Both the position numbers and the translations under genes were made by a program. From the IMG/VR virus record IMGVR_UViG_3300020178_000002, positions 62,001 to 126,000 of that record: DNA of 64,000 nt; one strand, given 5' to 3'. The notes beneath the pieces are model-generated. The model made no database searches and was not told where the DNA came from. It was given only the letters and a program-made list of their open reading frames with translations. Shown one piece after another: positions 11,484 to 55,008 of this stretch (the stretch's first letter is position 1; each line of letters starts with the position of its first letter).

Positions 11484-13088
11484 ATGTTAGATGATGAACG
11501 AATAAAGAAAACAGTTGAGAAGCTTAGGCAGATTCGGGCTAAAGAAGATTTAAAGCCCCCACCTTGCTCAATACTCAACACACACCTGCCTAATGGAGCT
11601 GAACTAAAACTAAGACAGTATCAGATTCAAGGTATTTTACACCTTCTGGCAATGCCGAGATTTGTTCTAGGGGATGATACAGGTTTGGGAAAAACCCTAC
11701 AAACAATCGCTGCTTTGTCTTATGTCTGGGATAAGAATCCAAACATAGCTGCTGTTATATGCACCACTAAGTCAGCAGTGGGGCAATGGGAGAGTGAATT
11801 TGATAAGTTCACCAATGGTGTGACAGTATTCAAGTGTTTGGGTACAAAGAAAAAGAGAGAGAAGATTCACAAAGAGTATCAACTTTTTGAAGGTCCAAAA
11901 GCTCTGATCATGGGGTACAGAACAGCAGTAATGGACTTTCAACACCTACAACATATGGTAGGTCATGTAATGGTATTTGATGAAGCCACAAACTTTAAAA
12001 ATGACAGAGCACAAGTACATCAAGTATGTAAACACTTGGCTGGTTCAGCAGAGAAAGTTTGGTCTTTATCTGCGACAATCATTAAAAATAGACTCATGGA
12101 AGCATGGGCTATTTATCAAGTAACTGTACCTGGATTGTTTTCAAATAAGACTCACTTTATGAGAGAGTATTGCATCACTAGAGAACAAAGCATAAAAGGC
12201 TCTAGGAGAAAGATACAGATTGTTGTTGGACACAGGAAGCGTGATATAGAAGCCTTTAGAGAGGTGATAGACCCTTTCTTTATTGGTCGCCCTAAGCATG
12301 AGGTTGCTAAAGAACTTCCTTTGCTTACAACTAAGATTTTAGAATGTGAGCTGAACAAGACCCAGAAAGCCAAGTATAAAGAAGCATTAGAAGGTATTCT
12401 TGAGACTATTGATGCTGAGACAGGTGAGGTTGTAGAAAAAGAAGTATCTAAGCTCACAGCAGTCACAATCTGTCAGCAGATAGTGAATCACCCAGCATTG
12501 ATAGATTGTGATGGAGATTCTAGCAAACTTGAGAGTCTTCTAGATCTTTTAACAAACGAGTTAGAGGGCGAGAAGATTATTATCTTTAGTAGGCTTCGTA
12601 AAATGGTAGACATTATGGAAGCTGAAATTGAGGCTAAGGGTATCAAGACTTGTCGTATCACAGGAGCTGAAAATGGAGACCAGAGACTTGCTAGTCAAAA
12701 GGCTTTCCAAGACCCAGAGAATGAAACTAAGGTTTGTTTGATTACAATGGCTGCTGCTGAAGGTGTGAACTTACAGCTAGCTAAAGCTGTTGTTTTTTAT
12801 GACACTCCTTGGTCTGCTGGAGACTATCTACAGATCATAGGTCGAATGATTCGCATTGGGTCTATACATGACAAGGTTTTCAGTTACCATGTTTGTGCTA
12901 AGAAGACTATTGATGAGAGGGTTATGAAGACCCTTAAAGCTAAGATGGGCTTGATAGAAGCTGTCTTAGGTAAGCGTTTGAAAGAAGAAGGTGAGTCTGA
13001 CGAGGTATTAGAGGTTGGTCAATCAGAGTTATCAGACATTTTTGATGGCCTTCTTGAAGATGCGAATGAGATCATAAAGGTGAAGTAA
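11484..13088 (+). CDS. SNF2-family (SF2) helicase/ATPase
   Basis: GDDTGLGKT, DEAT, LSAT, EGVNLQ, PWS..Q..GRMIRIG motifs; AAGGAG RBS. Confidence 0.92.
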   Translation: MLDDERIKKTVEKLRQIRAKEDLKPPPCSILNTHLPNGAELKLRQYQIQGILHLLAMPRFVLGDDTGLGKTLQTIAALSYVWDKNPNIAAVICTTKSAVGQWESEFDKFTNGVTVFKCLGTKKKREKIHKEYQLFEGPKALIMGYRTAVMDFQHLQHMVGHVMVFDEATNFKNDRAQVHQVCKHLAGSAEKVWSLSATIIKNRLMEAWAIYQVTVPGLFSNKTHFMREYCITREQSIKGSRRKIQIVVGHRKRDIEAFREVIDPFFIGRPKHEVAKELPLLTTKILECELNKTQKAKYKEALEGILETIDAETGEVVEKEVSKLTAVTICQQIVNHPALIDCDGDSSKLESLLDLLTNELEGEKIIIFSRLRKMVDIMEAEIEAKGIKTCRITGAENGDQRLASQKAFQDPENETKVCLITMAAAEGVNLQLAKAVVFYDTPWSAGDYLQIIGRMIRIGSIHDKVFSYHVCAKKTIDERVMKTLKAKMGLIEAVLGKRLKEEGESDEVLEVGQSELSDIFDGLLEDANEIIKVK

Positions 13089-13888
13089 TGGAAAACCAGA
13101 TTTTTAATGAGTCCTGTTTGGACACCATGAGCCGAATGGAAGACAACTCCATAGACTTAGTGGTTACTAGCCCTCCCTACGACAATCTTAGAAGCTACGA
13201 TAATGACGTAGATCAAACTTGGGGAGAGTCCGTTTGGAAGCCGATTATCTCAGAGTTGAGTAGAGTTCTAGCAGAAGGTGGGGTTATCGTTTGGGTTGTG
13301 GGAGATGCTACAATTGATGGTTCAGAGACAGGAAGCTCATTTAAACAAGCTCTCTATTTCATGGAGTGTGGACTTAACCTTTATGACACAATGATTTGGG
13401 AGAAAACAGGAACACCATTTCCTTCACAGGTGAGATACAATGGGATCTTTGAATATATGTTTGTTTTTTCTAAAGGCAAACCAAACACTTTCAACCCCTT
13501 AAAGAAGCCCAATAAGACAGCAGGCCAATACCGGAAGAATAGGACTTTCCGACAAAAAGACGGTGGGTTCTCGGAGGGTAAAGAGCTATCGGTTTCGGAA
13601 GAAAGTAATAGGAATAACATATGGGTCATTAAGAATGGCTTTAACAGGTCATCTAAAGATAAATATGCTTTTGACCATCCTGCCATATTCCCAGAAAACC
13701 TAGCTCACGATCATATTATCTCTTGGTCTAACGAGGGAGACTTAATTTACGACCCATTCTTAGGTTCAGGTACTACAGCTAAGATGTGCAAGATCACTAA
13801 GAGAAAATACATTGGATCAGAGATTAGTGAAGATTATTTCAAGATCGCACTTAAGAGGATCGAAGAAGCACAGGAGTATTTCTTTTAA
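13088..13888 (+). CDS. DNA N4-cytosine/N6-adenine methyltransferase, beta class
   Basis: TSPPY, HPAIFP, DPFLGSGTT, IGSEI. Confidence 0.93.
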   Translation: MENQIFNESCLDTMSRMEDNSIDLVVTSPPYDNLRSYDNDVDQTWGESVWKPIISELSRVLAEGGVIVWVVGDATIDGSETGSSFKQALYFMECGLNLYDTMIWEKTGTPFPSQVRYNGIFEYMFVFSKGKPNTFNPLKKPNKTAGQYRKNRTFRQKDGGFSEGKELSVSEESNRNNIWVIKNGFNRSSKDKYAFDHPAIFPENLAHDHIISWSNEGDLIYDPFLGSGTTAKMCKITKRKYIGSEISEDYFKIALKRIEEAQEYFF

Positions 13889-14691
13889 TGGAAAACCAGA
13901 TTTTTAATGAGTCCTGTTTGGACACCATGGGCAGAATGGAAGACAACTCCATAGACTTAGTGGTTACTAGCCCTCCCTACGATAATCTTAGAACCTATGA
14001 TAATGATGTAGATCAAACTTGGGGGGAATCCGTTTGGAAGCCGATTATCAAAGAGCTGGCTAGGGTTATCAAAGATGGAGGGGTTATCGTTTGGATTGTG
14101 AACGATGCAACAGTAGATGGTTCAGAGACAGGTTCTAGTTTCAAACAAGCCATTTATTTCATGGAGTGTGGGCTTAACCTTACGGACACTATGATTTGGG
14201 ATAAAGGGTCAAATGGTGCTGTAGGGAATAATAAGATTTATTGGCAGTCTTTTGAATATATGTTCGTCTTTTCTAAGGGTTCTCCTGCGACAATTAACTT
14301 AATAAAAGACAGGAAAAATAAGAGGGTAGAGAAGAAGAACAAGGGTACAAAAAGAATGAAAGATGGAGAGCTTATTCCCATCACAAAAGGGTCATACGGA
14401 GATTTCGGTAGGAGAACCAACATTTGGTCATACTTAACAGGCAGAGGACATTCAACTTTAGATGTGTATGCCTTTGAACACCCTGCTACATTTCCCGAAA
14501 ACCTAGCTCACGATCATATTGTTTCTTGGTCTAATGAGGGAGATGTGGTTTACGATCCATTCTTGGGTTCGGGCACTACAGCTAAAATGTCTAAGATGAC
14601 CAAGAGAAAATATATAGGGTCTGAGATTAGTGAAGATTATTTCAAGATCGCACTTAAGAGAATCGAAGAATCACAGGAATACCTATTTTGA
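13888..14691 (+). CDS. DNA N4-cytosine/N6-adenine methyltransferase, beta class (tandem paralogue)
   Basis: TSPPY, HPATFP, DPFLGSGTT; flanking domains near-identical to 13088-13888. Confidence 0.93.
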   Translation: MENQIFNESCLDTMGRMEDNSIDLVVTSPPYDNLRTYDNDVDQTWGESVWKPIIKELARVIKDGGVIVWIVNDATVDGSETGSSFKQAIYFMECGLNLTDTMIWDKGSNGAVGNNKIYWQSFEYMFVFSKGSPATINLIKDRKNKRVEKKNKGTKRMKDGELIPITKGSYGDFGRRTNIWSYLTGRGHSTLDVYAFEHPATFPENLAHDHIVSWSNEGDVVYDPFLGSGTTAKMSKMTKRKYIGSEISEDYFKIALKRIEESQEYLF

Positions 14692-18555: not shown

Positions 18556-19041
18556 ATGAGAAGAATCACAGCATCCGAGAAAATCGCCCAGCTTGAAAAG
18601 AGAGTCGCTCAACTTGAAAAAGAAAGCTTTGACTTAAAGCAGATTCCAGATTGGCTCTTTGGAAGAGTGGATTCTAAAATGGAAGACCTTCATACACAAC
18701 TTAACTACAACTTCAAAAATCTTTTTGGAAACAAGGTTAAAATCACCTATCCTGTTAAACAACAGATCAAAAACCCTTTTAATGTTTCACAAGCTAAGTA
18801 TGTAGGTAAGCTCATTGTTGGTCGTGAACACATTAACTACACTGTTCTTGTTCTTAACAACTCTAAAATCCAACTCGAGGGACTCAACCCTTTCTCACCA
18901 GAGCAGTTCTATAAGTCTTCTAACTTTGTTTTCTACATCTCTAACAAGAAGGTTGTTTCTTCAAGAGACATTACCTCTGTTGCTTCTTTAGAAGCTATTG
19001 TAGATGCTATTGAAGCTAAGTACTCTCATATCTTAGCCTAA
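18556..19041 (+). CDS. Hypothetical protein with shared N-terminal leader
   Basis: MRRITASEKIAQLEKRVAQLEKES leader. Confidence 0.75.
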   Translation: MRRITASEKIAQLEKRVAQLEKESFDLKQIPDWLFGRVDSKMEDLHTQLNYNFKNLFGNKVKITYPVKQQIKNPFNVSQAKYVGKLIVGREHINYTVLVLNNSKIQLEGLNPFSPEQFYKSSNFVFYISNKKVVSSRDITSVASLEAIVDAIEAKYSHILA

Positions 19042-19491: not shown

Positions 19492-21270
19492 TTACTCCAT
19501 GCTAGAGAGCATCTCTAAGTTTGCTTTTAATCTTCTTCTGTAACTAGGGTCTCTTTTAACCCTACTAGCAATTCTTTGCAGAGCTGCTTTTTTGTTTCCT
19601 TTGAACTTCTTTTTAATAAAGTCAGCAACGATACCAACAGTCTTAATGCCTTGACTAAAGAGGTATTTAACTAGCCAACCTAGTAGTATAAAAGGTTCTG
19701 ATGCGATTGCAAAGAGAATACCTACCAAAGCAGTAATAAAAGAAGCAGAGCTTAAAAGGATAGATAAAGTAGTAGATCCTAATACAACACCCATTTTTCT
19801 TAGGTGTGAAGCTGTAAACTTAGCATTTGTTAGCAATGCAAAGATGGCTACAAAAACAATGAACCCACCAGCAGAAGTTGCAGCACCCATTAGCACTGTT
19901 TTTGCAGAAAGAGCTTTACCTGTAAAGAGGAAACTCTTAAGGTAAGGCCAGATAAGCTTAAAAGCAGCTATTTTCAGCCCAACAAAAATTGATTTAACTG
20001 CTAATATCTTAGTGTCTGGCAACAAAGATAGATACTTCATTATCTCAGAATACTTGCGAATAGAGTACATCAAAACAATTTGTGCTTTAGAAGAAGGCTC
20101 TTTGAAGTTTGGTATTTCGTGTAGGCTAAATTTACCTTTTTGTACAGACTTGTACTCATCATACTTTCTTCTAAGCTCAAACAACTCTCCTTTTAGCAAA
20201 GCCTCATCTGCTCTATTGTCAGCCAGCTCAATCTTCTCTTCTAGTTCTCTAATTTGCATAGCTACAGATTCAAACTTTGAATTATTCTCAGCTACAACTT
20301 CTCTGTACTTTTGAGAAATTGTACTTTTAATGTCTTTCATATCTTCAAAGCTAGTAGTAAGAAACCATCCTTCTTTTAGATTTATATACTCATCTAACAA
20401 AGAAAGGTACTCTTTGTAGTTTGGATCAAAGCCAAAAAATTTCTCTAGACGTTCAAATGGTATATTTGCAGCCATAGCTACTTCGCCTAGAGTTTTTGCT
20501 TTAACTAAAGTAACGACATTATCCGCCCAGATTGCAGGATTCCTTTGAGGGTCAAATTCATCTAAAACCATCTGTGCGAAAGGGTTGTGCTCTGCCATTT
20601 TCTTTACTGTCTTTGGAGTATACTCAACAAACATAGGCCAAAGAGAGCCTAAGTGTATTTTTTTATTCAAGACAGCTCCAATCAAGTACTTAACCTTAGC
20701 AACCATTCCCTTATCTATCTTCTTGCTTGCTTTTTCAGAGATGTCATTAATGACAGTAGCAGTAGCATCTAAAACTACTTTCTCTTTATCAGAAGCAAGT
20801 CTTCTATTGTCAGACATAAGGTGTGCAAGAATTAAGTTATTCATACTAGCTTTTTTACTGTGTTTCATTTTCCAAGACTTCCATTTGCTATGTGCAGGAC
20901 TAGATTTGAGTGAGGGGTCATGCCCCCAATTTCTGAGACTGATTTCCCATTTGGACATTCCAGAGCCCTTAATAGGTTGTCCTGGTTTGCCACCTAACAT
21001 ACGAGAGTTAAAACCATTCTCCTGAGCAGCATTATCAAAGTCTTGAGCTGTCCATTTGTCGAATGGCTTCGACTTTCTTCTCTTTATTCTGTGAAAAGAG
21101 TCATAGCCAGATTGTATATCACCAGCTTCTTCTGCTTCTTCTCTATTAATTGAAGCAAGAAGCCTATCATCATTCTTTGCCCATGAGTCTAAAGACTTCT
21201 GACTCATGTTTATAAGTGACTTCCACTTATTGTAGATTTCTTTTTTTTCTTCTGGTGATCTTTTGGCCAT
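19492..21270 (-). CDS. DUF3140-like N-terminal domain fused to a coiled-coil and multi-TM region
   Basis: INMS..L..W and SLRNWGHDP signature of DUF3140; C-terminal hydrophobic helices; KKAS, RLAS and RIAS motifs; AAGGAGG RBS. Confidence 0.7.
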   Translation of the reverse strand: MAKRSPEEKKEIYNKWKSLINMSQKSLDSWAKNDDRLLASINREEAEEAGDIQSGYDSFHRIKRRKSKPFDKWTAQDFDNAAQENGFNSRMLGGKPGQPIKGSGMSKWEISLRNWGHDPSLKSSPAHSKWKSWKMKHSKKASMNNLILAHLMSDNRRLASDKEKVVLDATATVINDISEKASKKIDKGMVAKVKYLIGAVLNKKIHLGSLWPMFVEYTPKTVKKMAEHNPFAQMVLDEFDPQRNPAIWADNVVTLVKAKTLGEVAMAANIPFERLEKFFGFDPNYKEYLSLLDEYINLKEGWFLTTSFEDMKDIKSTISQKYREVVAENNSKFESVAMQIRELEEKIELADNRADEALLKGELFELRRKYDEYKSVQKGKFSLHEIPNFKEPSSKAQIVLMYSIRKYSEIMKYLSLLPDTKILAVKSIFVGLKIAAFKLIWPYLKSFLFTGKALSAKTVLMGAATSAGGFIVFVAIFALLTNAKFTASHLRKMGVVLGSTTLSILLSSASFITALVGILFAIASEPFILLGWLVKYLFSQGIKTVGIVADFIKKKFKGNKKAALQRIASRVKRDPSYRRRLKANLEMLSSME

Positions 21271-22504: not shown

Positions 22505-23851
22505 GTGTTGAAGATGACTACTAAGAAGAAAAAGATTAAAGAAAAGAAACAGCTTGCCTTTCAAAAAAAGTCAGCAGCCGCTTTTAGAGCTTTAGGGAGA
22601 GCTGTTTATAGACATAGGCACAAAGCTAGGAAAAAGTACCCTAGCAGGTCAAATGAGTCGTTTAAGAAAAGAGGTAGATGGCTTATCCGCTTTCTGGATA
22701 AAGAACCTAAGACCATAGAATTTCTTGATACCTTTATTGGAACAGAAGATATGAATCCTCGAACAAAAGGTTGGAGAAGAAAAGTCTTAGAGCTTCTCTC
22801 TCTTTACCTTTTAAACAAGATCACATTGAGAGAAGCCTCTAAACTATTTGTGCCTATAGCTGCTAAGTCTTATGAAGTTGTTGCTTTAAACAAACAGCAA
22901 AATAAGATTCAAAAAACATTGCCACCAGAGATCATGGCCTTTTTGCCTAGCTCTATTGTTGTAGAAGTAGACAAAAACAACAACATCAAGGGCATCAATG
23001 ATATGTTTGTAAATGATACATATACATTGAAGGAAAAAATAAAGACCCAGAAGAAGCTAGTTTACCGATACAACACTATTGTTAAGCAAGTAAAGAAAGA
23101 TATGAAATCCAGAGATGAGATTACTAAGCTCTGTGCTTTAGTTACTTCCATCATAATGGAAACAGGCATTAGACCTGGAAAGATTGGTAATAGTGCTGTC
23201 AAGATTATAGAAGACAAGAAGATAGAAGTAGAGACTTTTGGAGCTGTTTCTCTCAATGCAGACCATGTGTCTTTTGTTAAAGACAACTTTGCAGAATTAA
23301 AGTTTGTAGGTAAGAAGGGTGGCTTGAACACAGCATCTCTCAAAGACTCAGATGTGATCAAAGTTTTAAAAGACTATGTAGATAACTCATTGAAGTCTGG
23401 TTCTAAGTACATATTTACAACTAGAGATGGTGAACAGTTTGATTACAAAGACCTTTCAAGCTACTTTAGGAAGAACTTTAAGGGCTTTAAAATCACAGAC
23501 TTTAGAAAGCTAAGAGCTACTAGAACTGTTTTTGAGGTTCTTAAAGATGAAAGAAGAAATATGCTAGGCAGGATCAAAGAGATTGCGTCTGGTGAGGTTG
23601 AGTCTATCAAAGCTAAAGCTACCGAAGAGATTGTTAAAACAATAGAATTGGCTCACCAGCAGGCACAGGCTGCCTTGAGTCACATGGATTCAAGCACAAC
23701 TCAAGATGCTTATATTAACCCTCAGGTTCTCTTACGCTTCTTAAGCACTGCAAAGATAGAGTCTTCTTTTAGAGACTATATCATGCAAGGCAAAACAAAG
23801 TTCAGATTTGATCCTATGATGTTTGTTAAAGAAGCTGAGAAGCTGGCATAA
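22505..23851 (+). CDS. DNA topoisomerase IB
   Basis: Catalytic pentad in order: TGIRPG (R), FVGKKG (K), TDFRK (R), LSH (H), AYINP (Y). Confidence 0.85.
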   Translation: MLKMTTKKKKIKEKKQLAFQKKSAAAFRALGRAVYRHRHKARKKYPSRSNESFKKRGRWLIRFLDKEPKTIEFLDTFIGTEDMNPRTKGWRRKVLELLSLYLLNKITLREASKLFVPIAAKSYEVVALNKQQNKIQKTLPPEIMAFLPSSIVVEVDKNNNIKGINDMFVNDTYTLKEKIKTQKKLVYRYNTIVKQVKKDMKSRDEITKLCALVTSIIMETGIRPGKIGNSAVKIIEDKKIEVETFGAVSLNADHVSFVKDNFAELKFVGKKGGLNTASLKDSDVIKVLKDYVDNSLKSGSKYIFTTRDGEQFDYKDLSSYFRKNFKGFKITDFRKLRATRTVFEVLKDERRNMLGRIKEIASGEVESIKAKATEEIVKTIELAHQQAQAALSHMDSSTTQDAYINPQVLLRFLSTAKIESSFRDYIMQGKTKFRFDPMMFVKEAEKLA

Positions 23852-24332
23852 GCTTTATAGGTTCTACATCAGAAGCCCAATGGTTTCTAATTGAGTTAAT
23901 GATATAGTGACCATGCTCTACTTTATTGACCTTAATATCTCCATGAGTTGAATTGGTATAGATCATATACCTTGCTCTGGGTACGTCATCAAATAGGATG
24001 TCTGTTAAAACTGTGTCAACTTCAAGACTATCTATAAAAAAAGAAAAGTATGTTGTGATCTCAGCTTTAGGTAAAGAAGGATGGCTCATAACCACAGAGT
24101 GATACCTATATTCTTTGTTAGCAGAAATATCTTTTTGATCCTCTGTTGTCTTGACAAATTCGTAACCCATTTCAAGCATTAGACTTTGATAAAAACTCGT
24201 TGTGTTTGCTAAAAACAAGTACATCTGAACTTCATAATCATCACCAACAGCATTTGAGAAGCTAATAATAGGGTCTGGGATATTTATGTTCATAATCCTT
24301 TGACCATTTGAAACTTGTGTATAATTATCCAT
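23826..24332 (-). CDS. Hypothetical protein
   Basis: ORF coupled to 24325-24933. Confidence 0.6.
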   Translation of the reverse strand: MDNYTQVSNGQRIMNINIPDPIISFSNAVGDDYEVQMYLFLANTTSFYQSLMLEMGYEFVKTTEDQKDISANKEYRYHSVVMSHPSLPKAEITTYFSFFIDSLEVDTVLTDILFDDVPRARYMIYTNSTHGDIKVNKVEHGHYIINSIRNHWASDVEPIKLMPASQLL

Positions 24333-24933
24333 TTGTTAACCTCACAAAAGCTCTAGGAATCCAATATGATTCAGACTGTCTGAGCATAGTCTGAAAATCT
24401 TCTTCGGACATGTCTGTAGGAGTTCCACCATCCCAGCCATAATAGTTGGCTTTCAAAGCATAGGGTGTAATAGGTGGCATAGATTCATCATTGTCTGGAT
24501 ATGCATTTATGCTTATTAGTTCCCAATTATCTGCACGAGGCTCTAGCTCATTGTCACCTGTTATAGAAAGGGCTAATGAGTTGTAGAAAATCAACCCTAC
24601 TTTTTGAGCTTGGGGTTTCTGACTACGAAGAACTTCCCTGTAAGGTCTCGGTTCTTCACCTTCTACTCTAGACCTAATTCCCTCAAAGACTTCTTCATCT
24701 TCTTGTATTAAACAAACTGCTGAATAAAAGTGTTGGCTTAGGTTTTCTGGGAGAGTAGCAACGAGGACTCTACCACCTTCATTGTGGTTTAATGGTAGAT
24801 ATCCTTCTCTTGTTTCAGCAACTAGTAAGAGATTAGCCACTTCCTCTAAGGGGAGTGTAGAGTGAGATAGGGGTGCTTCTGCGGTGTGTCTTTTAGCAAA
24901 GCTATTTACAGCAATCTTGTTTATAGTAGTCAA
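24325..24933 (-). CDS. DUF3228-like protein
   Basis: FAKRH, EGY, GEEP, WELISINA, PITP, GGT, YW pattern recalled for DUF3228. Confidence 0.6.
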   Translation of the reverse strand: MTTINKIAVNSFAKRHTAEAPLSHSTLPLEEVANLLLVAETREGYLPLNHNEGGRVLVATLPENLSQHFYSAVCLIQEDEEVFEGIRSRVEGEEPRPYREVLRSQKPQAQKVGLIFYNSLALSITGDNELEPRADNWELISINAYPDNDESMPPITPYALKANYYGWDGGTPTDMSEEDFQTMLRQSESYWIPRAFVRLTNG

Positions 24934-25008: not shown

Positions 25009-26430
25009 TTACTCTAAAGAAGTTCCTTTAATTTCTTTAATCTTATCAGAGATTTTTTTGAGGTACTTATCCGTAGTAGCCTCTATGCTTTTTAGTTCTA
25101 TACCTGTAAACTCAAAATACTGCATAGCTTCTTCATTATCTAATAGCTGTTTAGCTACCTCTGATGTACTGATTTCACCTTGGTAATTCTCACCTTCTTC
25201 ATTGGTTATATAGCACAAACAAAGCTCTCCTTGAGGGTTTTCCTTTGTGAAAACATAACATTTATCTCTGATATAGGTTGAGGAGCTAGGGTCTGATGGT
25301 TTGTAGCCCTCTCTCTTATCAATTTCCTCTAAGACTTTTTGAGCATGTTCAATAGGGTACTCTAAAAGCATACCTTCCATATACCCATATGGCTTAGTTC
25401 CAAGTACAAGATGTTTTCTTCCTGTGCTATATATGTTGAAAGACCTTGATAGGTTATTAACATGGCCTCTTCTCTTTTTTGTGATTAGCTCTGGAAAGAT
25501 AGGTTCATACATAAGAGAGCCATAGACGAAAACCTTTAGAGTGTTTTCATGTGGGGCCATTAGAGGAATGTCTAACTTATTTTTTTCTAGGTTTGACAGA
25601 GTGACTTCACCCTCATCATTTAGATAAATACGCTTAACACAAAACTTACATTTCTCTTTGCCCTTGAAGTGTTTCTCATAGCCCTCATAAATACTATCTT
25701 CATCTATTAGGATTACAGTCATTCTTTTATACACAGGGTCTAATATGATCTGATTAGAAGTGAACATATTGTCTGTCTTTCTAACCACATTAAAAGGATT
25801 ATGTATGTCCTTTATTCTTTGAGTATAAAGCTTTTTGACTAGATCCATTGGAGATCTTTTGTAGGATTGCATTGCTTTCAATGCAGTATTGTATCTCGTT
25901 TCAGAAGATTCCCTATCTTCACCCTCAAGGTAGCCTGCGTCTGGGTGTCTAATACCGTGATTAGTTCTAACAAAGTGTTTATCTGTAATCTCCTCAACCT
26001 TTGGAGAATGCAAGCTTGTTTGTTCTACAATAAAAGTGTTCTTACCATCCGTGATAATATTATGACCTCTAACACCATTCCTATGGTGTGTCATTACATG
26101 AAGTGCTTCTAAAAGAGAATTACACTCTAAAGCCTTTAGAAACCTCCAAGCATCTCCTGAGAATCTGTTTCTATCTCCAGGTCTTTTTTTCTTACCCTCT
26201 TTTTCATCAGAGATTACAGCAAGAGCAGCATTTGTTATTGCAATACCATGCTCATTAATGCCCTCTACCCAGCCCGATATAGTATCTTGGAAATAAAGTA
26301 TTTCAGTGCCATTTTCAGCCCTTACATGGTATATCTTAAAAGTAGGGACATAGTTCCTATCTCTATTTTTGAACACTATCTTTCTATTTCCTACTTCAGT
26401 GAGTGCAATCACACAAGCGTTTTTATCCAT
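25009..26430 (-). CDS. Fusion: Cys-type Ntn hydrolase + gamma-glutamylcyclotransferase (GGCT/ChaC-like)
   Basis: C6-VIAL, KNRDR, GINEHGI, RTNH (Ntn); VFVYGSLM, IDKREGY (GGCT). Confidence 0.75.
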   Translation of the reverse strand: MDKNACVIALTEVGNRKIVFKNRDRNYVPTFKIYHVRAENGTEILYFQDTISGWVEGINEHGIAITNAALAVISDEKEGKKKRPGDRNRFSGDAWRFLKALECNSLLEALHVMTHHRNGVRGHNIITDGKNTFIVEQTSLHSPKVEEITDKHFVRTNHGIRHPDAGYLEGEDRESSETRYNTALKAMQSYKRSPMDLVKKLYTQRIKDIHNPFNVVRKTDNMFTSNQIILDPVYKRMTVILIDEDSIYEGYEKHFKGKEKCKFCVKRIYLNDEGEVTLSNLEKNKLDIPLMAPHENTLKVFVYGSLMYEPIFPELITKKRRGHVNNLSRSFNIYSTGRKHLVLGTKPYGYMEGMLLEYPIEHAQKVLEEIDKREGYKPSDPSSSTYIRDKCYVFTKENPQGELCLCYITNEEGENYQGEISTSEVAKQLLDNEEAMQYFEFTGIELKSIEATTDKYLKKISDKIKEIKGTSLE

Positions 26431-26499
26431 AGTGGGAATCCTTTGTTTTTATATCTCTATAGGATAAAGGTATATAACAATTACAATACGAGGCGAGAA

Positions 26500-26910
26500 A
26501 TGAGACACTCAAACCAAAGACAGGAGCATGATATGGGTGCTGGTATTATGCTTACTTGCAAGAAAAAAGTTTTAATACTCAAAAGGGCTAACTACAAGAA
26601 AGATCCTTTTGCAGGATATTGGAACTTTCCAGGTGGTAAAACAGATAACACTGAATCTGCATATGAAACAGCCCTTCGAGAAACCTTTGAAGAAACAGGC
26701 TTTGAAGAAAGAGACATTAAGATCTATAAACATGTAGAAAGCAGAGGCTACACAATGTTTATAGGTGTTCTTGATGAAGAGTATATGCCTGTTCTTGATG
26801 AAGAACACACAGACTACAAATGGGTAGATATTGAAGAAGTAAGAAACTATATCTTACACCCAAAAGATGAAAGGTGCTTCAAGAAGTATCTTGCTAGCAA
26901 GAAGAAATAA
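26500..26910 (+). CDS. NUDIX hydrolase
   Basis: PGGKTDNTESAYETALRETFEETGF Nudix box; start reassigned to ATG 26500. Confidence 0.9.
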   Translation: MRHSNQRQEHDMGAGIMLTCKKKVLILKRANYKKDPFAGYWNFPGGKTDNTESAYETALRETFEETGFEERDIKIYKHVESRGYTMFIGVLDEEYMPVLDEEHTDYKWVDIEEVRNYILHPKDERCFKKYLASKKK

Positions 26911-27975
26911 CTACCAGACTTGGAAGTGAACTCCTAAAGACCAAGTGTTAGTTCCATCAGATCCTGCTACCCAACCGAGACCAGGTGCTAGGTTTAGGTT
27001 CTTACCTAGCAAATAAGGATGCCATGTTGCTTTTGCCCCCAAGAAAACATTTGAGGGAGTGATAACACCATTAGCACCTATTCTGTATTGGCCTTTCTGG
27101 AAGTTAAGTAAACTTGCTCCGATGGAAAGCCCAAATTCATTCGCTTGATAAGTACTGCCTACCAAAAGACTAGGTTCAAAAAGTTTTAACAAAGTAGAGT
27201 TCTGAGCATCTTTTTTAGGTACATATATGAGCTTACTGTCAAGGTTAGGGTCGCCTTTTATGAGCTTGCTTTCAAGACCTGGTATTGGAACAAAATTGCC
27301 TTCTTGAACATAGCCACCTAATACATGAATCCCTTGATTCTGAACAGCACCAGAACCCAATCTTGATTGATCTTCACCATATGTGATGGCTACAACTTTA
27401 AAGGCTAAGTTAAGGTCAATGCTTCCAAGACCTTTCCATAGATTCAGAGAAGAGAATCTAGCTAGTGGTTTGCCATTTACTTGATAAGGAGACTCCCATT
27501 CAAAAGTGAATGGGGTACATTTATCTGGGTGGTCAGAGCATCTAGTTATATCTAGTCCGTCTACACCTTTCCAAGACGGGGGTGGTGCTGTTTTTTCTTT
27601 TACAGTCCTACCTATTTTCCCAATCCCTTTTTTAATCCTACCCTCCATACCTAAAACTCTTTGAGAGATACTATCTACCCTAGCACCTGTTTCTTTTGTG
27701 TATTTGTAAATAGCATCTTGTGTTCTTTGGTCTAGATTCGAAATAATCTTTGAAGATTGTTCTTCTAGCTCTTTCCTTGAAACCATTTGAGATTTAACAA
27801 CATTAATCTCATCTCTGGTCTCTGACAAGATTCTAGCAGTCTTACTTAACTCTCCATTCATTTGTTTCTGAATAGTGTTGTCTAACTGACTTATCTTATA
27901 GGTCATCCATGCATTGTTAGCAAGAGAGAGTGTGAGCAGACCTGAAGCTATATATGCTGCTATTTTAATATCCAT
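26911..27975 (-). CDS. Envelope protein: N-terminal TM, coiled coil, C-terminal beta-strand region (spanin-like candidate)
   Basis: IAAYIASGLLTLSLA anchor; ends WSLGVHFQVW; AAAGGA RBS at ATG 27975. Confidence 0.55.
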   Translation of the reverse strand: MDIKIAAYIASGLLTLSLANNAWMTYKISQLDNTIQKQMNGELSKTARILSETRDEINVVKSQMVSRKELEEQSSKIISNLDQRTQDAIYKYTKETGARVDSISQRVLGMEGRIKKGIGKIGRTVKEKTAPPPSWKGVDGLDITRCSDHPDKCTPFTFEWESPYQVNGKPLARFSSLNLWKGLGSIDLNLAFKVVAITYGEDQSRLGSGAVQNQGIHVLGGYVQEGNFVPIPGLESKLIKGDPNLDSKLIYVPKKDAQNSTLLKLFEPSLLVGSTYQANEFGLSIGASLLNFQKGQYRIGANGVITPSNVFLGAKATWHPYLLGKNLNLAPGLGWVAGSDGTNTWSLGVHFQVW

Positions 27976-27981
27976 TTTATT
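27969..27981 (+). promoter_or_regulatory. Putative late promoter motif
   Basis: TATCCATTTTATT, 38 nt upstream of 28020. Confidence 0.45.
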
Positions 27982-28019
27982 GTCCTTTGTCTTAGGCATC
28001 ATTAAAAAAGAGGTATATA

Positions 28020-28868
28020 ATGAATAAAATATCAACACAAGAAATTAGAAAGCTTGAAATTAGGATAGCAAGGTTAGAGAAGGAGTCCAAGATTCTTGAT
28101 TGGTTGAAGTCTATCCCTATAAACCTACTCTCTAAGATTCAAGACTCCTTTGGAGAAATTTCTTCTCTTTTAAAGCTTACCTTAAAAAAGAATAAGGAAA
28201 GTATCTTAGAGGGCTTAGTTAAGTTCTTAGAAGTTAGAGTCAGCAGTGCATTAGATAAATCTCTTATGTCTGGATACCCTATTAGGTTTTATATCACTAA
28301 TTTTGACCCAAACAATCCTATGAACTCTGAAGCCCAGCTTATGGTTAAAGAAGTAGGTGGTGAGTTAAAATCTTATGAAGCTACTATCCGAGATATGCCA
28401 TCAATGCTTAAAGATGTTGAGGGTCTACCCCCTAGCATAGATAAAGATATTAAAGGTGCATATATTTCATGGTGGAAAGACTTTGAAGAAGAACTAAAAA
28501 TGCTTCGTGAAGGAAGGATGAGTAGGTCTACGGATTTGAAATCTTTCTGGAACAGAATCAAAGGTGCAAGTAAGTTTCTTTACAGGTTCTTGAGAGTTGT
28601 CTACAGCTTTAAATGGGCTTATGAAGTGTTCTCTTTAGTTGTGATGTTTACAACCCTAATGCCTTTGGCAGAAGTTGCACCAGAAAGAGGGAAGACCCTC
28701 ACTTATCTAGGTGTTGGTAAGATGATCTTAAACATATTTGAAAAGGTTCTTCGCAGAAGAAAAGTAAATATGGATCTCTTTGATGAGCTTGCAGCTAAAA
28801 AAGCATCTTCTCACCCTTACCCATATTGTAATAGCTTAGTCTCTCATTACGAAAGGGTTTGCAAGTGA
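28020..28868 (+). CDS. Leader-bearing membrane protein (paralogue of 29547-30425)
   Basis: IRKLEIRIARLEKES leader; GAYISWWKD; RRRKVN...KKAS tail. Confidence 0.75.
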   Translation: MNKISTQEIRKLEIRIARLEKESKILDWLKSIPINLLSKIQDSFGEISSLLKLTLKKNKESILEGLVKFLEVRVSSALDKSLMSGYPIRFYITNFDPNNPMNSEAQLMVKEVGGELKSYEATIRDMPSMLKDVEGLPPSIDKDIKGAYISWWKDFEEELKMLREGRMSRSTDLKSFWNRIKGASKFLYRFLRVVYSFKWAYEVFSLVVMFTTLMPLAEVAPERGKTLTYLGVGKMILNIFEKVLRRRKVNMDLFDELAAKKASSHPYPYCNSLVSHYERVCK

Positions 28869-29546: not shown

Positions 29547-30425
29547 ATGAGACAACTAACAGCATCACAAAAAATCGCTATTCTTGAGAACAGAGTGGCT
29601 CAACTTGAAAAGCAAGCAATCATTCAAATGATTAAGAATCTGGGAATGAACTGGTTTAAACCTCTAATTGCAGCAGCTCAAGACCTTGTGTCCACTTTCA
29701 AGGGGTCAATTATAAGTAATAGAGATACTTTTGCTTCTGCTGCTGAAATGAACTTACAGGCGAGACTGACCGAAGCTCTCCAAAGAAATATGTTTTTTGG
29801 GAAAACCACATCAATAAGTGTTGAAAAATTTGATGCTAAAAACCCAGTAAACTCTGTTTTGAAAGTCTCCTATTCTGTAAATGGAGAACCCAGGTTTCTT
29901 GATTTCACTCTGAGTTCTGTACAGAAAATTAGAGAGATTGACAGTAAAACCCAAAAAGACATTATGGGAGCATATGTTTCATGGTGGAAAGATTGGGGTG
30001 ATTCTCTGGATATTGTAATCAATGGCAAATCTCCATCAAAAAGTATGGTTCAGAGCGTAATTGATTTTTTCTCTAGGAAGTTTAAGTTCCTTGGGAGATT
30101 GCTTTCTGCACTAGTTAAATTTGGAACAAAAATAAGAACCCTAACCCTGATCCCTACTTTAGTAGCATCTTTAATAGTTTGCCTTTGTGGACCTCTCGGC
30201 CTAGTTGTTGGTAGTACTGTAGCTATGAACCAAATTGGGTTAATGACACTACCAAAAGTTGTAGACATGATTCTTAAGATGATTGAGGGTGCTTTCAGAA
30301 GAAGAAAAGTAAACATTGATAAGTTCAATGAAATAATTGGCAAACAAGCATCTGTGAATAAGTATGCAAGTAAATACCCACACACATATTCTATGTTATT
30401 AAGACTTGAGGGTGCTGGAGTCTAA
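29547..30425 (+). CDS. Leader-bearing membrane protein (paralogue of 28020-28868)
   Basis: MRQLTASQKIAILENRVAQLEKQA; GAYVSWWKD; RRRKVN...KQAS. Confidence 0.75.
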   Translation: MRQLTASQKIAILENRVAQLEKQAIIQMIKNLGMNWFKPLIAAAQDLVSTFKGSIISNRDTFASAAEMNLQARLTEALQRNMFFGKTTSISVEKFDAKNPVNSVLKVSYSVNGEPRFLDFTLSSVQKIREIDSKTQKDIMGAYVSWWKDWGDSLDIVINGKSPSKSMVQSVIDFFSRKFKFLGRLLSALVKFGTKIRTLTLIPTLVASLIVCLCGPLGLVVGSTVAMNQIGLMTLPKVVDMILKMIEGAFRRRKVNIDKFNEIIGKQASVNKYASKYPHTYSMLLRLEGAGV

Positions 30426-33729: not shown

Positions 33730-34503
33730 ATGAAAGTTGAATTAGATGGTGGAAATATCACACTTTATCATGGAGACTGCACCGAAGTATTGAAGTCCCT
33801 ATCTCCAAACAGCGTAGAGGTTGCAGTTACATCACCTCCTTATAATCTTCACCTTGAGGGTGCTGAATACTCCAAATCTAAAACCGCTATGGCATGGAAT
33901 AAGAAGTATGAAGATTGGTATGATGACAATATGTCAGAGTGGATGTATCAAGGGTGGCAACAAAGCGTAGTGCATGAACTGGTGAGAGTTTGTAGAAGTA
34001 GCGTATTCTACAACCACAAGATCAGATATGCATACCATCCTCGCAACAAAGAAAGAAACCTTACAAACATATACCACCCTATGGATTGGCTGAACAAGTT
34101 TCCTATCTGGTGCGAAATCATCTGGGATAGGTGTGGTATAGGTCACCCCTGTGGTCGGTATCACATCCAGACCGAAAAGATCTATCAGATAGGCAAACCT
34201 TGTAAATGGGATAACAAAGATGGTCTGACCAACATTTGGAAGATCCCTCCATCAAAGAATAAAGGTCATGTGTGTACCTTCCCAGAAAAGCTGGTGGACA
34301 ACTGCATATTACCTACGACAGAAAAAGGTGACATAGTGATAGATCCTTTTCTGGGGTCTGGTACTACTGGGGTAGTCGCTGTTCAAAGAGGTCGTAAATT
34401 CATCGGGATAGAGAAAAATGAAAAGTTTTTTGAATTAGCTCTAAAAAACATAGAGGACGAGATTAAGAAAAGAGATTCATCTCTGTTCTTCTATGAGGGC
34501 TAA
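33730..34503 (+). CDS. DNA N4C/N6A methyltransferase, beta class
   Basis: TSPPYN, HVCTFP, DPFLGSGTT; start ATG 33730 after GGAGGG. Confidence 0.92.
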   Translation: MKVELDGGNITLYHGDCTEVLKSLSPNSVEVAVTSPPYNLHLEGAEYSKSKTAMAWNKKYEDWYDDNMSEWMYQGWQQSVVHELVRVCRSSVFYNHKIRYAYHPRNKERNLTNIYHPMDWLNKFPIWCEIIWDRCGIGHPCGRYHIQTEKIYQIGKPCKWDNKDGLTNIWKIPPSKNKGHVCTFPEKLVDNCILPTTEKGDIVIDPFLGSGTTGVVAVQRGRKFIGIEKNEKFFELALKNIEDEIKKRDSSLFFYEG

Positions 34504-45129: not shown

Positions 45130-46464
45130 ATGAGTAAATACAACGCTATAAGAGAAGAGAATGAAAAGTTTAATGCATGGATTCTTGAAGAAGAAGAGGC
45201 AGGTGGCTTCTTTGATCCTATAGAAGAAAGAAAAGTTAGGTTTTTTAATGAACTGAGTGAAGAAGGCAAGGAGAAAGCATACGAAGAATTTGAAGCTACC
45301 AAAGAAATCAAAGACATTAAAAGATATAGGGCTCTGGCATTTCAGGGCAAGCTTTTTGCTTTGCGGTGGTTGTTAAAAAGATCTAAGGATTTTGAAGAAT
45401 TTAAAGAGCCTTTAGAAAACAAAACCAAGAAATTAGATCTCAGTCCTAGTAAAGATCGAAGAACAAAAATCAAAGATATGACCCAGACCAAAGCAAGAGA
45501 CTTATACTTGGAAGATGTTATATTTGATGACTTAGACCTATCTTGGTCAGACTTCTCGGGTAGCACTCTAGTCAACTGTAGTTTTAATAACACAACACTG
45601 ACAGGTGCAAAGTTTGTAAACTGTTCTTTACAGATAGTAGACTTTGGTGGTGCAGACCTCACCTTAGTGGACTTCAAAAATGTGGATCTTCGAGCCACCA
45701 AGGACTTTGGTAAGGCAACAATTAAGCAAACCAACTTATCTGGTGCTGATGTTAGAGGTGTTGATCTAAGAGGTGCTGGAGAAAGTAAGGAAGATCTTTT
45801 CTATGTTAGTCCAACAACTAAATTTGATGTTACTAACAAAAAGCTGATTACTAAAGTGCCTATTTACATGGAGAAGTTTGATGTTCTGTTAAAAAACATA
45901 GAAGACCAAATCAATAAAGGAAAAGAAATTGGATATGATAAGTCTAAAGTCAAAGAACTAAAAAAATATCTTAATGAAAATACATTTAAGGTCTTCTATG
46001 GAGATAGGATATTAAAAGTACTAGACTACTACAAAAAAGAGCTTTCTTGGAGAAAACGCTTGCCAGATTCCTTTTTGCCTTTTTCTTATTCTTTTAAAGA
46101 CTTAAAGAAGTTCTTTAGGAACACTGACAGCCAAGTTAAGAATATGGTTAGCAAGATTAATCAAAAGATTGGCTCAAAGAGATATGTACTGACAGAGCCT
46201 GTTAATACTAACAGCCATACTAACAGATTAAAGGGCAAGATAGTCTATGGGGGAAATCTTTTAGGTTTATCTCAAACAGTGCCCTATTACATAATTGTAA
46301 ACATTGGAAATTCTGGCTTTGGCCTTAGAAGATTTTATACACCAGAGTCTTATATCTTCTGCATACCTCAAAAGAGTTGCTCATCCGAATTTGAAGAATT
46401 TGGTCAAAGAGAGCTAGGTACTATTGTTATGAAGATAGAAGACTTAATCTGGAGAGAACGTTAG
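45130..46464 (+). CDS. Pentapeptide-repeat protein with extra N- and C-terminal domains
   Basis: LDLSW SDFSG STLVN CSFNN TTLTG AKFVN...ADLTL VDFKN VDLRA; AAGGAG RBS. Confidence 0.85.
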   Translation: MSKYNAIREENEKFNAWILEEEEAGGFFDPIEERKVRFFNELSEEGKEKAYEEFEATKEIKDIKRYRALAFQGKLFALRWLLKRSKDFEEFKEPLENKTKKLDLSPSKDRRTKIKDMTQTKARDLYLEDVIFDDLDLSWSDFSGSTLVNCSFNNTTLTGAKFVNCSLQIVDFGGADLTLVDFKNVDLRATKDFGKATIKQTNLSGADVRGVDLRGAGESKEDLFYVSPTTKFDVTNKKLITKVPIYMEKFDVLLKNIEDQINKGKEIGYDKSKVKELKKYLNENTFKVFYGDRILKVLDYYKKELSWRKRLPDSFLPFSYSFKDLKKFFRNTDSQVKNMVSKINQKIGSKRYVLTEPVNTNSHTNRLKGKIVYGGNLLGLSQTVPYYIIVNIGNSGFGLRRFYTPESYIFCIPQKSCSSEFEEFGQRELGTIVMKIEDLIWRER

Positions 46465-46928
46465 TACTGATATAAAGCCATGATCTTTTGACGCTGGCGA
46501 GGTGTTCTAACGCTATTTTTGACGATAGTTTTAATGTTCTGGATGATGAATTTAGGGTTTTCAGAAGAGAAGTTAGGCACTACCACTAAATTAAATTGTT
46601 CTCTGGTGTATATACTTGTTAAGTAAACCCTTAGTAGGTCTTGCTCCTTATCAAGCTCTACATTAATAAACATAAGTTGTTGTCTATCATTTTTGATATG
46701 ACCTCGTGCCTCTAATTGGTATATTTTATTGGGCTTTTTGATGTAGCCATCATCACCTTTGGTGTTTGCAAGACCATAGTCTACCAGAGCATCTCCTGTT
46801 CCGTTAGCTATTGCCTTAAGGGTTTCTTTAATTTTATCTCCAAAAATGTCAAATAGTCCAGCTTCTTTTTCAAGCCTGGCGATTCTCATTTCAAGAGATC
46901 TGATTTGTTGTGCTGCTGTTCTTCTCAT
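46461..46928 (-). CDS. Hypothetical protein with shared N-terminal leader
   Basis: MRRTAAQQIRSLEMRIARLEKEA from ATG 46928 (AGGA RBS). Confidence 0.75.
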   Translation of the reverse strand: MRRTAAQQIRSLEMRIARLEKEAGLFDIFGDKIKETLKAIANGTGDALVDYGLANTKGDDGYIKKPNKIYQLEARGHIKNDRQQLMFINVELDKEQDLLRVYLTSIYTREQFNLVVVPNFSSENPKFIIQNIKTIVKNSVRTPRQRQKIMALYQY

Positions 46929-46969
46929 TTTACGTTTTCCTATCTGATAAAGATTCATTCCTTGTGGGA

Positions 46970-54654: not shown

Positions 54655-55008
54655 TCAATCTTTATAGAAAAAGATCTCATGTCCCTCTAAAAATTTGAAC
54701 GTTTCTTTTTTAGTCTTGGAACTGTATTCTTTTACCAACAAAGGATTAATTTGTGACACCCAAAGTAGCAAGTCAGGTTTATGAGGTAGCTTAGTCCAAC
54801 CGATATAGATTAAACCATCTTCATCAAGCCAAACTCTCTCATGCCCTAAAGCTTTTCGATTAGTAAAAAGTATAACCAAGCCATTCTTCTCTACCCAAGC
54901 TTTAGACTTCTCTAAAGTTTCGGGGTCTTTATCATAGAACCCTCGTATATAAGAAGAGGGTAGTATGCAAGAAGGCTTGACTCTACGCTTATACTTTATT
55001 GGCTTCAT
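54655..55008 (-). CDS. Hypothetical protein
   Basis: TAATG-coupled to 55008-55976. Confidence 0.55.
   Translation of the reverse strand: MKPIKYKRRVKPSCILPSSYIRGFYDKDPETLEKSKAWVEKNGLVILFTNRKALGHERVWLDEDGLIYIGWTKLPHKPDLLLWVSQINPLLVKEYSSKTKKETFKFLEGHEIFFYKD

Follow-up and report, generated by a model that had tools for sequence, protein, structure and literature searches.

Maturation proteases and N-terminal-nucleophile hydrolases

Many phage head proteins are made with N-terminal propeptides that are removed during capsid maturation. In phage T4, the prohead protease gp21 cleaves the capsid-targeting sequence from internal proteins IPI-III and from the ejected enzyme Alt at sites bearing the P3/P1 signature I/L-x-E, examples in Alt being ITE-6 and LTE-619; at the former, Alt loses only six residues (PMC5694885). 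In phiKZ and SPN3US, ejection proteins are processed at A-X-E by a prohead protease of the S80 family, and many head proteins of these jumbo phages carry N-terminal propeptides, multiple cleavage motifs and paralogous relationships (PMC10052503). In these T4 proteins, cleavage only releases the propeptide.

Cysteine-type N-terminal-nucleophile (Ntn) hydrolases, such as isopenicillin-N acyltransferase (AAT, MEROPS C45), penicillin V acylase (PVA) and bile-salt hydrolase (BSH; C59), likewise depend on N-terminal processing, because their catalytic Cys must become the free N-terminus. Autoprocessing is the rule in this superfamily, and the residue preceding the Cys is small in AAT (G/C junction) and PVA (MLG/C junction). 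Known members mature by autoproteolysis, by methionine removal or, for periplasmic enzymes, by signal peptidase; none is known to use a viral capsid protease. A third relevant group is the ChaC/gamma-glutamyl cyclotransferase family (ChaC2, yeast Gcg1, GGCT and GGACT).

A predicted two-domain enzyme with a five-residue leader

The window analyzed here is a 64,000-nucleotide stretch (positions 62,001 to 126,000) of IMG/VR record IMGVR_UViG_3300020178_000002, a 312-kb phage genome designated G000. An initial annotation had noted that an open reading frame at window positions 25009..26430 places the putative nucleophile of an Ntn hydrolase directly after K-x-A, and this observation was confirmed. 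The frame lies on the minus strand, encodes 473 residues beginning MDKNACVIAL, and ends with a stop codon at 25009-25011. Translation starting elsewhere had been named beforehand as grounds for refutation; however, the start is secure, as an in-frame TAA (26449-26451) lies six codons upstream with no intervening start codon (479 residues of open frame in all), and a Shine-Dalgarno-like AAAGGA (26439-26444) sits 8 nt before the ATG. A promoter and terminator scan around the gene found no more signals than shuffled controls.

The leader M-D-K-N-A is encoded by 26416..26430 (minus strand), with K3 at P3 and A5 at P1 relative to the junction, and the TGT codon for Cys6, the predicted nucleophile, occupies 26413..26415. 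The Ntn-hydrolase domain follows (25696..26415, residues 6 to about 245) and contains the motifs NRDR (residues 22-25), GINEHG (57-62) and RTNHG (155-159). Residues 14-218 match Pfam AAT (PF03417) with 33.7 bits against a cut-off of 23.2. In an AlphaFold2 model of the protein (pLDDT 89, pTM 0.76), Cys6 directly precedes the first strand (residues 7-13), and Foldseek comparison of the N-terminal half returned isopenicillin-N acyltransferase (2x1c/2x1d/2x1e, E 7e-9 to 2e-7), 3gvz, bile-salt hydrolases, penicillin V acylase and PLBD1, in agreement with the four-layer alpha-beta-beta-alpha fold. As in C45 and C59 enzymes, an R-D pair lies on strand 2 and an Asn in the RTNHG loop. Sequence searches of the PDB with the N-domain profile and with the C-domain gave nothing usable; only fold comparison was informative, and there is no detectable sequence match between the Ntn domain and any solved chain.

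A beta-rich segment without a family match (25546..25695, residues about 246-295; modeled strands 247-253, 262-270 and 276-280) connects this domain to a ChaC/GGCT-like domain (25132..25545, residues about 296-433). Residues 300-433 match Pfam ChaC (PF04752) with 35.7 bits against a cut-off of 21, and the domain also matches GGACT (PF06094; 24.1 bits against 22.8) and PHROG 2520. Foldseek placed the C-terminal half with ChaC2 (6ky1/6k95; E 1e-10, TM 0.77) and a yeast homolog (5hwi). The YGSL substrate-binding motif is present and conserved as VYGSLM at residue 302, and KREGY at residue 372, a candidate motif for the catalytic Glu identified without residue-level alignment to a solved ChaC, is kept in 13-15 of 17 two-domain relatives. 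A poorly conserved helical tail of 40 residues closes the protein (25012..25131, residues 434-473; modeled helices 433-448 and 455-468). Unlike the described ChaC-type enzymes, the cyclotransferase domain is thus fused behind an Ntn hydrolase, although in the related locus L135 the two are encoded by separate, adjacent genes.

Junction sequences across the family

On this sequence alone, the K-x-A motif is weak evidence: 26% of G000 proteins have K/R at residue 3, and 6.9% combine it with A/S at residue 5. Across homologs, by contrast, the pattern is strong. The initial annotation had proposed aligning relatives to ask whether K/R-x-A before the Cys is conserved only in this phage lineage, and in the three alignments made here Cys6 is invariant, including across 63 homologs from both clades of the family, and K3 is nearly invariant in one of them. 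R23, D24, R25, N157, H158 and R179 are also invariant across both clades, among 27 invariant positions in the catalytic core. Of 171 distinct junctions, 82 are of the form [K/R]-x-[A/S/G] before the Cys (K in 72 and R in 10 at P3; A in 54, S in 25 and G in 3 at P1), with 12 different residues at P2. A further 88 have the form [I/L]-x-E (I in 46, L in 36 and other residues in 6 at P3), the T4 gp21-type site, again with P2 free, and one relative (P0114) has simply Met before the Cys. The junction MFSNE|C in relative P0077 hints at an [S/A/G]-x-E form, as would be predicted for genomes with phiKZ-type S80 proteases. Leader lengths range from 4 to 492 residues overall, and in the [K/R]-x-[A/S/G] clade from 5 to more than 300.

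The junction type co-occurs with the type of head protease. E-type proteins, which occur in T4-like phages, lie in jumbo-phage records with a T4-type (Pfam S77) protease: S77 was detected in 11 of 16 IMG/VR records, all five misses being incomplete, and in the cultured Chryseobacterium phage MA9V-2 (Ntn protein MA9V2_239), whereas none of the 16 records has the G000-type protease. Among nine records with the K-x-A type, S77 was found in none and the G000-type protease in eight. G000 itself gave no match to Pfam S77 or S78 (PF03420 or PF04586). Its own head protease (G000 176745..178133, outside the window) has no Pfam match and was found through PHROGs (phrog_18299, head maturation protease, E 1e-16). 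Foldseek comparison of the protease model was weak, with T4 gp21 as best hit at E 0.03; VIA-align also ranked T4 gp21 first, followed by herpesvirus proteases, but at Z 8.4, the edge of what that method treats as meaningful. The enzyme resembles the phage G protease, for which the literature searched reports no cleavage specificity. Moreover, a tree of the family separates the two junction types at a single branch; the co-occurrence with protease type therefore represents one evolutionary event, and its instances cannot be counted as independent support.

A shared N-terminal leader in the genome

Twenty-six proteins of G000 share an N-terminal leader, ..LE-x-R-[IV]-A-x-LE-K-[EQ]-[AS]. The motif R[IV]A.LE occurs in the first 45 residues of 26 of 319 proteins and only once in the other 82,417 residues, and conservation ends after [KR]-[EQ]-[SA]. 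Some Ntn relatives carry this whole leader directly against the Cys; for example, relative P0055 (..SKVASLHIASLNKKA|C) has the same leader, in the same register, as G000 ORF 10246 (..QRVASLHIAKMEKEA|F). Similarly, the E-type genome G003 encodes at least 15 proteins with the leader type of its Ntn protein, MKNLIRSILNEE.., and E-type leaders resemble T4 capsid-targeting sequences. The protease family, the motif and the very uniform, coiled-coil-like leader of about 24 residues in G000 (I..LE.R[IV]A.LEK[EQ][AS]) all differ from the phiKZ/SPN3US system. The protein studied here, like all its two-domain relatives, has only 5-6 leader residues and lacks the long targeting-like leader, and its K-x-A matches only the inferred end of the leaders in this genome.

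Gene context in relatives points to the head module. In L139, the Ntn gene lies just upstream of scaffold-like, protease and capsid genes. In other relatives, the Ntn domain forms the N-terminus of ORFs of more than 2000 residues with R-V-A motifs at domain borders. A type IB topoisomerase gene (22514..23851, plus strand; Pfam Topoisom_I, E 4.5e-15) is linked to the gene in the window; the Ntn and topoisomerase domains share one giant ORF in the related genomes G021 and G023 and are adjacent genes in L139. In G000, however, the gene is about 90 kb from the head module. PHROG and Pfam scans of neighboring ORFs (24325-24933, 23826-24332, 26911-28002 and 19492-21270) and of the leader proteins found no families. 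The Ntn family, with roughly 900 viral-contig homologs, is almost confined to viral contigs: a pattern-limited scan of 185,579 species genomes gave one hit, in a MAG contig with an RVA-type leader, which offered no clue to the host.

Proposed activation by the head-maturation protease

The explanation favored here, which is held to be only somewhat more likely than not, is that the gene encodes an inactive precursor of a bifunctional enzyme. Removal of MDKNA would make Cys6 the free N-terminal nucleophile of an AAT/PVA-like amidohydrolase, and the cut would be made in trans by the phage's own head-maturation protease, a phage-G-type enzyme of the predicted gp21/assemblin fold. This protease would read K/R at P3 and a small residue (A/S/G) at P1, the signature that also closes the leader of about 26-32 other proteins of this phage. 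The enzyme would then switch on only late in infection, in or near the maturing head, and by analogy with T4 Alt and the internal proteins it could travel with the DNA into the next cell. The two domains may act in sequence on a gamma-glutamyl amide or peptide, with glutathione as the prime candidate: the cyclotransferase would release 5-oxoproline, and the Ntn domain would hydrolyze the remaining amide or dipeptide. The comparative analysis itself establishes the modeled folds, the invariant Cys, the junction rule and the co-occurrence with protease type; that cleavage occurs and exposes the Cys, that the protease performs it, that the protein is packaged, and which substrate is turned over are inferences from sequence and structure prediction. 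The six residues that T4 gp21 removes from Alt are a precedent for a very short propeptide. Entry into the prohead, where such proteases normally act, is particularly tentative given the short leader and the distance from the head module. Also against this explanation, one relative (P0114) starts with Met directly before the Cys, so the enzyme needs no propeptide to fold.

The interpretation offered by the initial annotation is thus partly supported. Its domain assignments, the requirement for a free N-terminal Cys and the statement that a cut after K-N-A would expose exactly this residue were correct. Its suggestion that the same [K/R]-x-A code activates the enzyme gains support from the conservation of P3 and P1 throughout a deeply diverged clade whatever the leader length, from the I/L-x-E site of the sister clade in genomes with T4-type proteases, and from the shared leaders ending at the Cys, but this evidence is comparative only. 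The annotation further suggested removal of amide- or isopeptide-linked groups from peptidoglycan, glutathione or protein modifications; glutathione-type gamma-glutamyl substrates fit the ChaC-like fold best, and nothing in the present data points to peptidoglycan or protein isopeptides.

Autoprocessing, which the annotation had named as an alternative, is considered less likely but is not excluded. In this scenario, Cys6 attacks the A5-C6 bond (N-to-S acyl shift) and releases the leader unaided, the conserved P3 and P1 residues seat the leader in the enzyme's own active site, and the resemblance to protease sites is a lineage-specific coincidence or a relic. Such a mechanism is compatible with the small P1 residue in this clade, with AAT, the best structural match, being solved as both precursor and mature form, with the single split between junction types, and with the absence of a long leader and the distance from the head module. 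Yet the catalytic core is the same in both clades while P1 is Glu in one and A/S/G in the other, so the chemistry does not dictate P1; furthermore, the E-type junction reproduces the P3/P1 rule of the protease in those same genomes, and long leaders belong to multi-protein families of the same genome whose last conserved residue abuts the Cys. Prediction of a complex between protease residues 30-262 and Ntn residues 1-245 returned a score of 0.00, which is not evidence either way.

Removal of the leader by host aminopeptidases or another cytoplasmic peptidase, or retention of the leader by a protein that works in another way (for example, as a binding module or with an internal Cys), appears very unlikely. 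The Met-Cys start of P0114, for which host methionine aminopeptidase would suffice, lends this some plausibility. However, strict conservation at P3 and P1 with a free P2 does not fit stepwise trimming, junctions lying 140-490 residues inside longer ORFs keep the same rule, and the full set of Ntn catalytic-type residues is invariant. The remaining possibility, that K-x-A merely reflects lysine-rich N-termini in an A+T-rich genome, was rejected as contradicted by the family-wide counts: all 82 distinct junctions keep K/R at P3 in sequences down to about 33% identity, including junctions far from any start codon and phages of 53-55% G+C (L137 and L139) or otherwise GC-rich (G021 and G023).

Implications

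Literature searches found no paper combining Ntn hydrolases with prohead proteases or jumbo phages, and no experimental data on this family or on the specificity of its protease. To the best of our knowledge, and as far as these searches reach, activation by the head protease would make this the first Ntn hydrolase whose activation is handed to a viral morphogenetic protease, and enzyme activity would then be tied to capsid maturation. A broader reading, which is tentative and held at slightly less than even likelihood, is that capsid-maturation proteases of at least two different families activate a phage-specific Ntn-hydrolase family by cutting in front of its catalytic nucleophile, so that the junction works as a built-in read-out of protease specificity. 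On this reading, the large, uncharacterized phage-G-type protease family (more than 1600 members), common in huge environmental phages, would cleave after [K/R]-x-[A/S], a signature that has not been described, and the specificity of other uncharacterized prohead proteases could be read from sequence alone. The roughly 30 leader-bearing proteins of this phage, and the giant multi-enzyme ORFs of its relatives (Ntn, topoisomerase IB and pyrophosphatase, with an RNA-repair enzyme encoded by the neighboring gene), would be head-packaged cargo released at R-V-A/K-x-A sites. The finding points to a large set of leader-tagged, probably packaged, proteins in these phages, including enzymes (glutathione-type cyclotransferase, topoisomerase IB and RNA-repair modules) that could act at the very start of infection.

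Gene Structure and Predicted Domains

The coding region of interest lies on the minus strand (window 25009..26430) and constitutes a single ORF of 473 aa that begins MDKNACVIAL. Its start codon is not in doubt, as an in-frame TAA lies six codons upstream with no start codon in between (open frame 479 aa), AAAGGA is located 8 nt before the ATG, and a later start would lose the conserved Cys. The window is part of a 312,136-bp virus record (here G000) that carries direct terminal repeats, is rated complete, and has a G+C content of 38%. A NUDIX hydrolase gene (26533-26910, plus strand; Pfam E 1.5e-19) lies on the opposite strand, just upstream of the start of the Ntn gene.

Pfam analysis identified AAT (PF03417) at residues 14-218 (33.7 bits against a cut-off of 23.2), ChaC (PF04752) at residues 300-433 (35.7 bits against a cut-off of 21), and GGACT, whereas PHROGs returned only 'gamma-glutamyl cyclotransferase'. 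In an AlphaFold2 model built on 63 homologues (pLDDT 89.2, pTM 0.76), Cys6 lies directly before the first strand (residues 7-13) and NRDR lies on the second. Foldseek comparison of this model with the PDB returned human ChaC2 (E 1e-10, TM 0.77 on the target) and the yeast glutathione-specific cyclotransferase for the C-terminal half, and precursor and mature isopenicillin-N acyltransferase (E 7e-9), CV2077, bile-salt hydrolases, penicillin V acylases, and PLBD1 for the N-terminal half; sequence searches of the PDB found nothing. Across both clades of homologues, 27 positions are invariant, including C6, R23, D24, R25, N157, H158, G159, and R179. A candidate for the catalytic Glu motif of the predicted cyclotransferase, KREGY at residue 372, is conserved in most two-domain relatives. 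The initial annotation described an Ntn-hydrolase nucleophile placed directly after K-x-A in a protein fused to a GGCT/ChaC-like domain, and this observation is confirmed.

The Junction Preceding the Conserved Cysteine

Taken alone, K at residue 3 and A at residue 5 mean little, because 6.9% of the proteins of this genome have K/R at residue 3 together with A/S at residue 5. The family changes this picture. A search of 5.8 billion proteins gave 373 relatives, and two scans of IMG/VR gave 517 and 348 encoding stretches; the residues preceding the conserved Cys were then extracted from 120 of these proteins and 159 loci. Of the 171 distinct junctions obtained, 82 have A (54), S (25), or G (3) at P1, and these have K (72) or R (10) at P3 without exception, while P2 takes 12 different residues. 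A further 88 have E at P1, with I (46), L (36), or other residues (6) at P3 and a free P2, and the single remaining junction is M↓C (the arrow marks the junction). The rule holds for leaders of 4-7 residues (MDKNA↓C, MKKQS↓C, MINE↓C, MDTKLNE↓C) and of 10-44 residues, as well as for junctions buried 76-492 residues inside longer ORFs.

Co-occurrence With Head Proteases

The [I/L]-x-E motif is the site of the T4 prohead protease gp21, with ITE-6 and LTE-619 cited as sites in Alt (PMC5694885), whereas SPN3US uses A-X-E (PMC10052503). The large viral records were therefore searched for protease families. Among the records with an E-type junction, Pfam S77 (gp21 type) was found in 11 of 16, the five misses being 33-93% complete, and the protease type of G000 was found in 0 of 16. 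Among the records with a K-x-A-type junction, S77 was found in 0 of 9 and the G000-type protease in 8 of 9, the miss being 48% complete. The only cultured phage lineage found with a family member comprises Chryseobacterium phage MA9V-2 (OR513085.1) and its relative MA9V-1. The MA9V-2 protein (MA9V2_239; L204:3971-4795) is E-type (MTSADNNAFINE↓C, ending ..AFINE↓C), and the phage has an S77-type domain at 167084-167422; it is a ready experimental system.

The G000 protease (G000 176745..178133; L008:16745-18133) matches PHROG 18299, 'head maturation protease', at E 1e-16, and lies two genes upstream of the major head protein. Its family has more than 1600 members, and its cultured relatives are Tunturiibacter phage Tunturi_5, cluster C mycobacteriophages, and others; the capsid protein relates the phage to Bacillus phage G. 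In a model of moderate quality (pLDDT 70), the best structural match of the protease is T4 gp21 (VIA-align Z 8.4), followed by herpesvirus proteases, which indicates the same fold class but a different family. The protease family has a nearly invariant W-D-K-V-R-V-A-S near its own N-terminus (R25 and A27 at 90% or more), an R-V-A motif that could be an autocleavage or targeting site, and a Cys-rich insert (C184..C191-x-x-C194..C205) suggests a zinc ribbon. In the 618,736-bp record G023, the head-protease gene (L202) lies in an open frame of 971 aa and appears to be interrupted by an intein-like insert (MITMADGTVRPIEEIREGDEVLSH..).

In a tree of 124 mature Ntn domains, the A-type and E-type junctions fall on the two sides of a single branch (SH-aLRT 90); the co-occurrence with protease type is therefore one evolutionary event, not many. 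The weight of the argument lies elsewhere. The E-type junction reproduces a protease specificity that was known beforehand, and both signatures are held without exception over very deep divergence (end-to-end paths above one change per site), while P2, P4, and leader length vary freely. Moreover, the catalytic core is the same in both clades, so the chemistry of self-cleavage does not dictate whether P1 is E or A/S.

A Shared Family of N-Terminal Leaders

The genome of this phage contains a striking family of N-terminal leaders. The motif R[IV]A.LE occurs within the first 45 residues of 26 of 319 predicted proteins and once in the remaining 82,417 residues, an enrichment of about 150-fold, and a looser pattern finds 32 proteins. 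These 26-32 otherwise unrelated proteins share a leader of roughly 24 residues and are encoded in the window at 18556-19041 (plus strand), 28020-28868 (plus strand), 29547-30425 (plus strand), and 46461-46958 (minus strand), with 22 more elsewhere in G000. When aligned, the conserved block reads I-x-x-L-E-x-R-[IV]-A-x-L-E-[KR]-[EQ]-[SA], and information content falls to background right after the [SA], although the anchor columns, unlike the flanking ones, were selected by the pattern. K/R at +6 together with A/S at +8 occurs in 20 of the 26. The block looks like a targeting and cleavage leader for head cargo.

Some Ntn relatives carry this very leader butted against the Cys. The relative P0055 reads MPKNSISKVASLHIASLNKKA↓C and G000 ORF 10246 reads MRNLTASQRVASLHIAKMEKEA↓F, in identical register, while other relatives read ..PRRIAASYLKKA↓C, ..HRVAHAHIASMTREA↓C, and ..HKVATQRVARAKVA↓C. 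The E-type genome G003 shows the same logic in its own dialect, in that at least 15 proteins start like its Ntn protein (MKNLIRSILNEELHREVIHE↓C), many of them clustered around that gene. Thus, in both lineages the Ntn protein is, or was, a member of the genome's set of leader-tagged proteins, and the leader ends exactly at the nucleophile. The protein in the window has lost all but the last five residues; however, T4 Alt, an ejected enzyme, loses only six residues at ITE-6 (PMC5694885), so a very short propeptide is not without precedent. Relatives carry a second recurrent N-terminal motif, K-L-I-[KR]-[LI]-A-Y-x-x-P-[ED]-L-R-x-x-[IL].. (L128:1537-2094, L135:978-5186, L137:9554-9901, and P0074), which is repeated inside one 1402-aa protein and may be another targeting leader.

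Genomic Context

In several relatives the Ntn gene sits in the head module, although in G000 it is about 90 kb away from it. At the locus L139, the gene lies 4-5 kb upstream of the scaffold-like, protease, and capsid genes. In the record G021, the Ntn domain (leader MKPSPARVVAMMQGRTA↓C) opens a 2130-aa ORF that also holds topoisomerase IB and an inorganic pyrophosphatase and ends just before the scaffold-like and protease genes; S-x-x-R-V-A motifs lie at its domain borders, at residues 404, 867, 1439, 1529, and 2119, as in a polyprotein. In G023, the Ntn and TopoIB domains share a 2020-aa ORF about 9 kb from the protease. In the window, a TopoIB gene (22514-23851, plus strand) lies 1.2 kb from the Ntn gene; the corresponding stretches in relatives are L134:9959-16351, L162:9785-15847, and L139:10888-12069. 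The gene before the giant Ntn ORF of G021 (L134:7203-9962) encodes a 919-aa fusion of poly(A)-polymerase/CCA-type head, HAD, and 2'-5' RNA ligase domains (RNA repair) with SRVA-type leader motifs, and the relatives P0065 and P0067 fuse Ntn with PolyA_pol.

At the locus L135, a GGACT-like gene directly precedes the Ntn gene; the Ntn-cyclotransferase fusion in the window therefore reflects a conserved functional pair. The window also contains a 592-aa ORF (19492-21270, minus strand) whose N-terminal domain (EKKEIYNKWKSLINMSQKSL..) is encoded directly upstream of the Ntn gene at the locus L128, and a gene of this type lies about 3 kb upstream of it in L135. This domain is fused in frame to the Ntn domain in the relatives P0026, P0029, P0042, P0049, and P0064, with the M-x-K-x-[AS]↓C junction kept; the only family hint is a weak DUF3140 match in the L128 homologue. 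Elsewhere in the window, two tandem, near-identical DNA-methyltransferase-like paralogues (MENQIFNESCLDTM.RMEDNSIDLVVTSPPYDNLR..) lie at 13088-13888 and 13888-14691 (plus strand), with a third related gene 19 kb away (33730-34503, plus strand), and adjacent paralogues with similar N-termini (MINFL.(D/S)P..F.A....AS.D...LY.IANYQ..) lie at 55008-55976 and 55969-57033 (minus strand). The Ntn family is nearly absent from cellular genomes, as a pattern-limited scan of 185,579 species genomes gave one hit, on a MAG contig with an RVA-type leader.

Interpretation and Significance

The explanation considered best, and somewhat more likely than not, is that the protein is a zymogen in which the head-maturation protease cuts after K3-N4-A5 and creates the N-terminal Cys, whereupon the amidase and the ChaC-like domain would act together on a gamma-glutamyl compound, with glutathione the most likely. 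The interpretation of the initial annotation, in which a cut in the proposed [K/R]-x-A register would expose this Cys, is partly supported. The invariant Cys, the junction rule, and the co-occurrence with protease type emerge directly from the comparison; cleavage itself and its agent remain inferences from that comparison, packaging into the head and ejection into the next host are inferred from analogy and from gene context in relatives, and the substrate is inferred from the ChaC-like fold. The main rival, ordinary autoprocessing with the conserved residues serving the enzyme's own active site, is possible but less likely. Action of host peptidases, or no processing at all, appears improbable, and a compositional accident is very unlikely, being contradicted by the internal junctions.

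No paper linking Ntn hydrolases with prohead proteases or jumbo phages was found, and none gives the specificity of the phage-G-type protease. Ntn hydrolases, ChaC-like enzymes, and propeptide processing by prohead proteases are each of a known kind. What appears to be new, well supported by comparison although still without biochemical proof, is the K/R-x-A/S signature, the leader family of this lineage, and the proposed hand-over of Ntn activation to a capsid protease.
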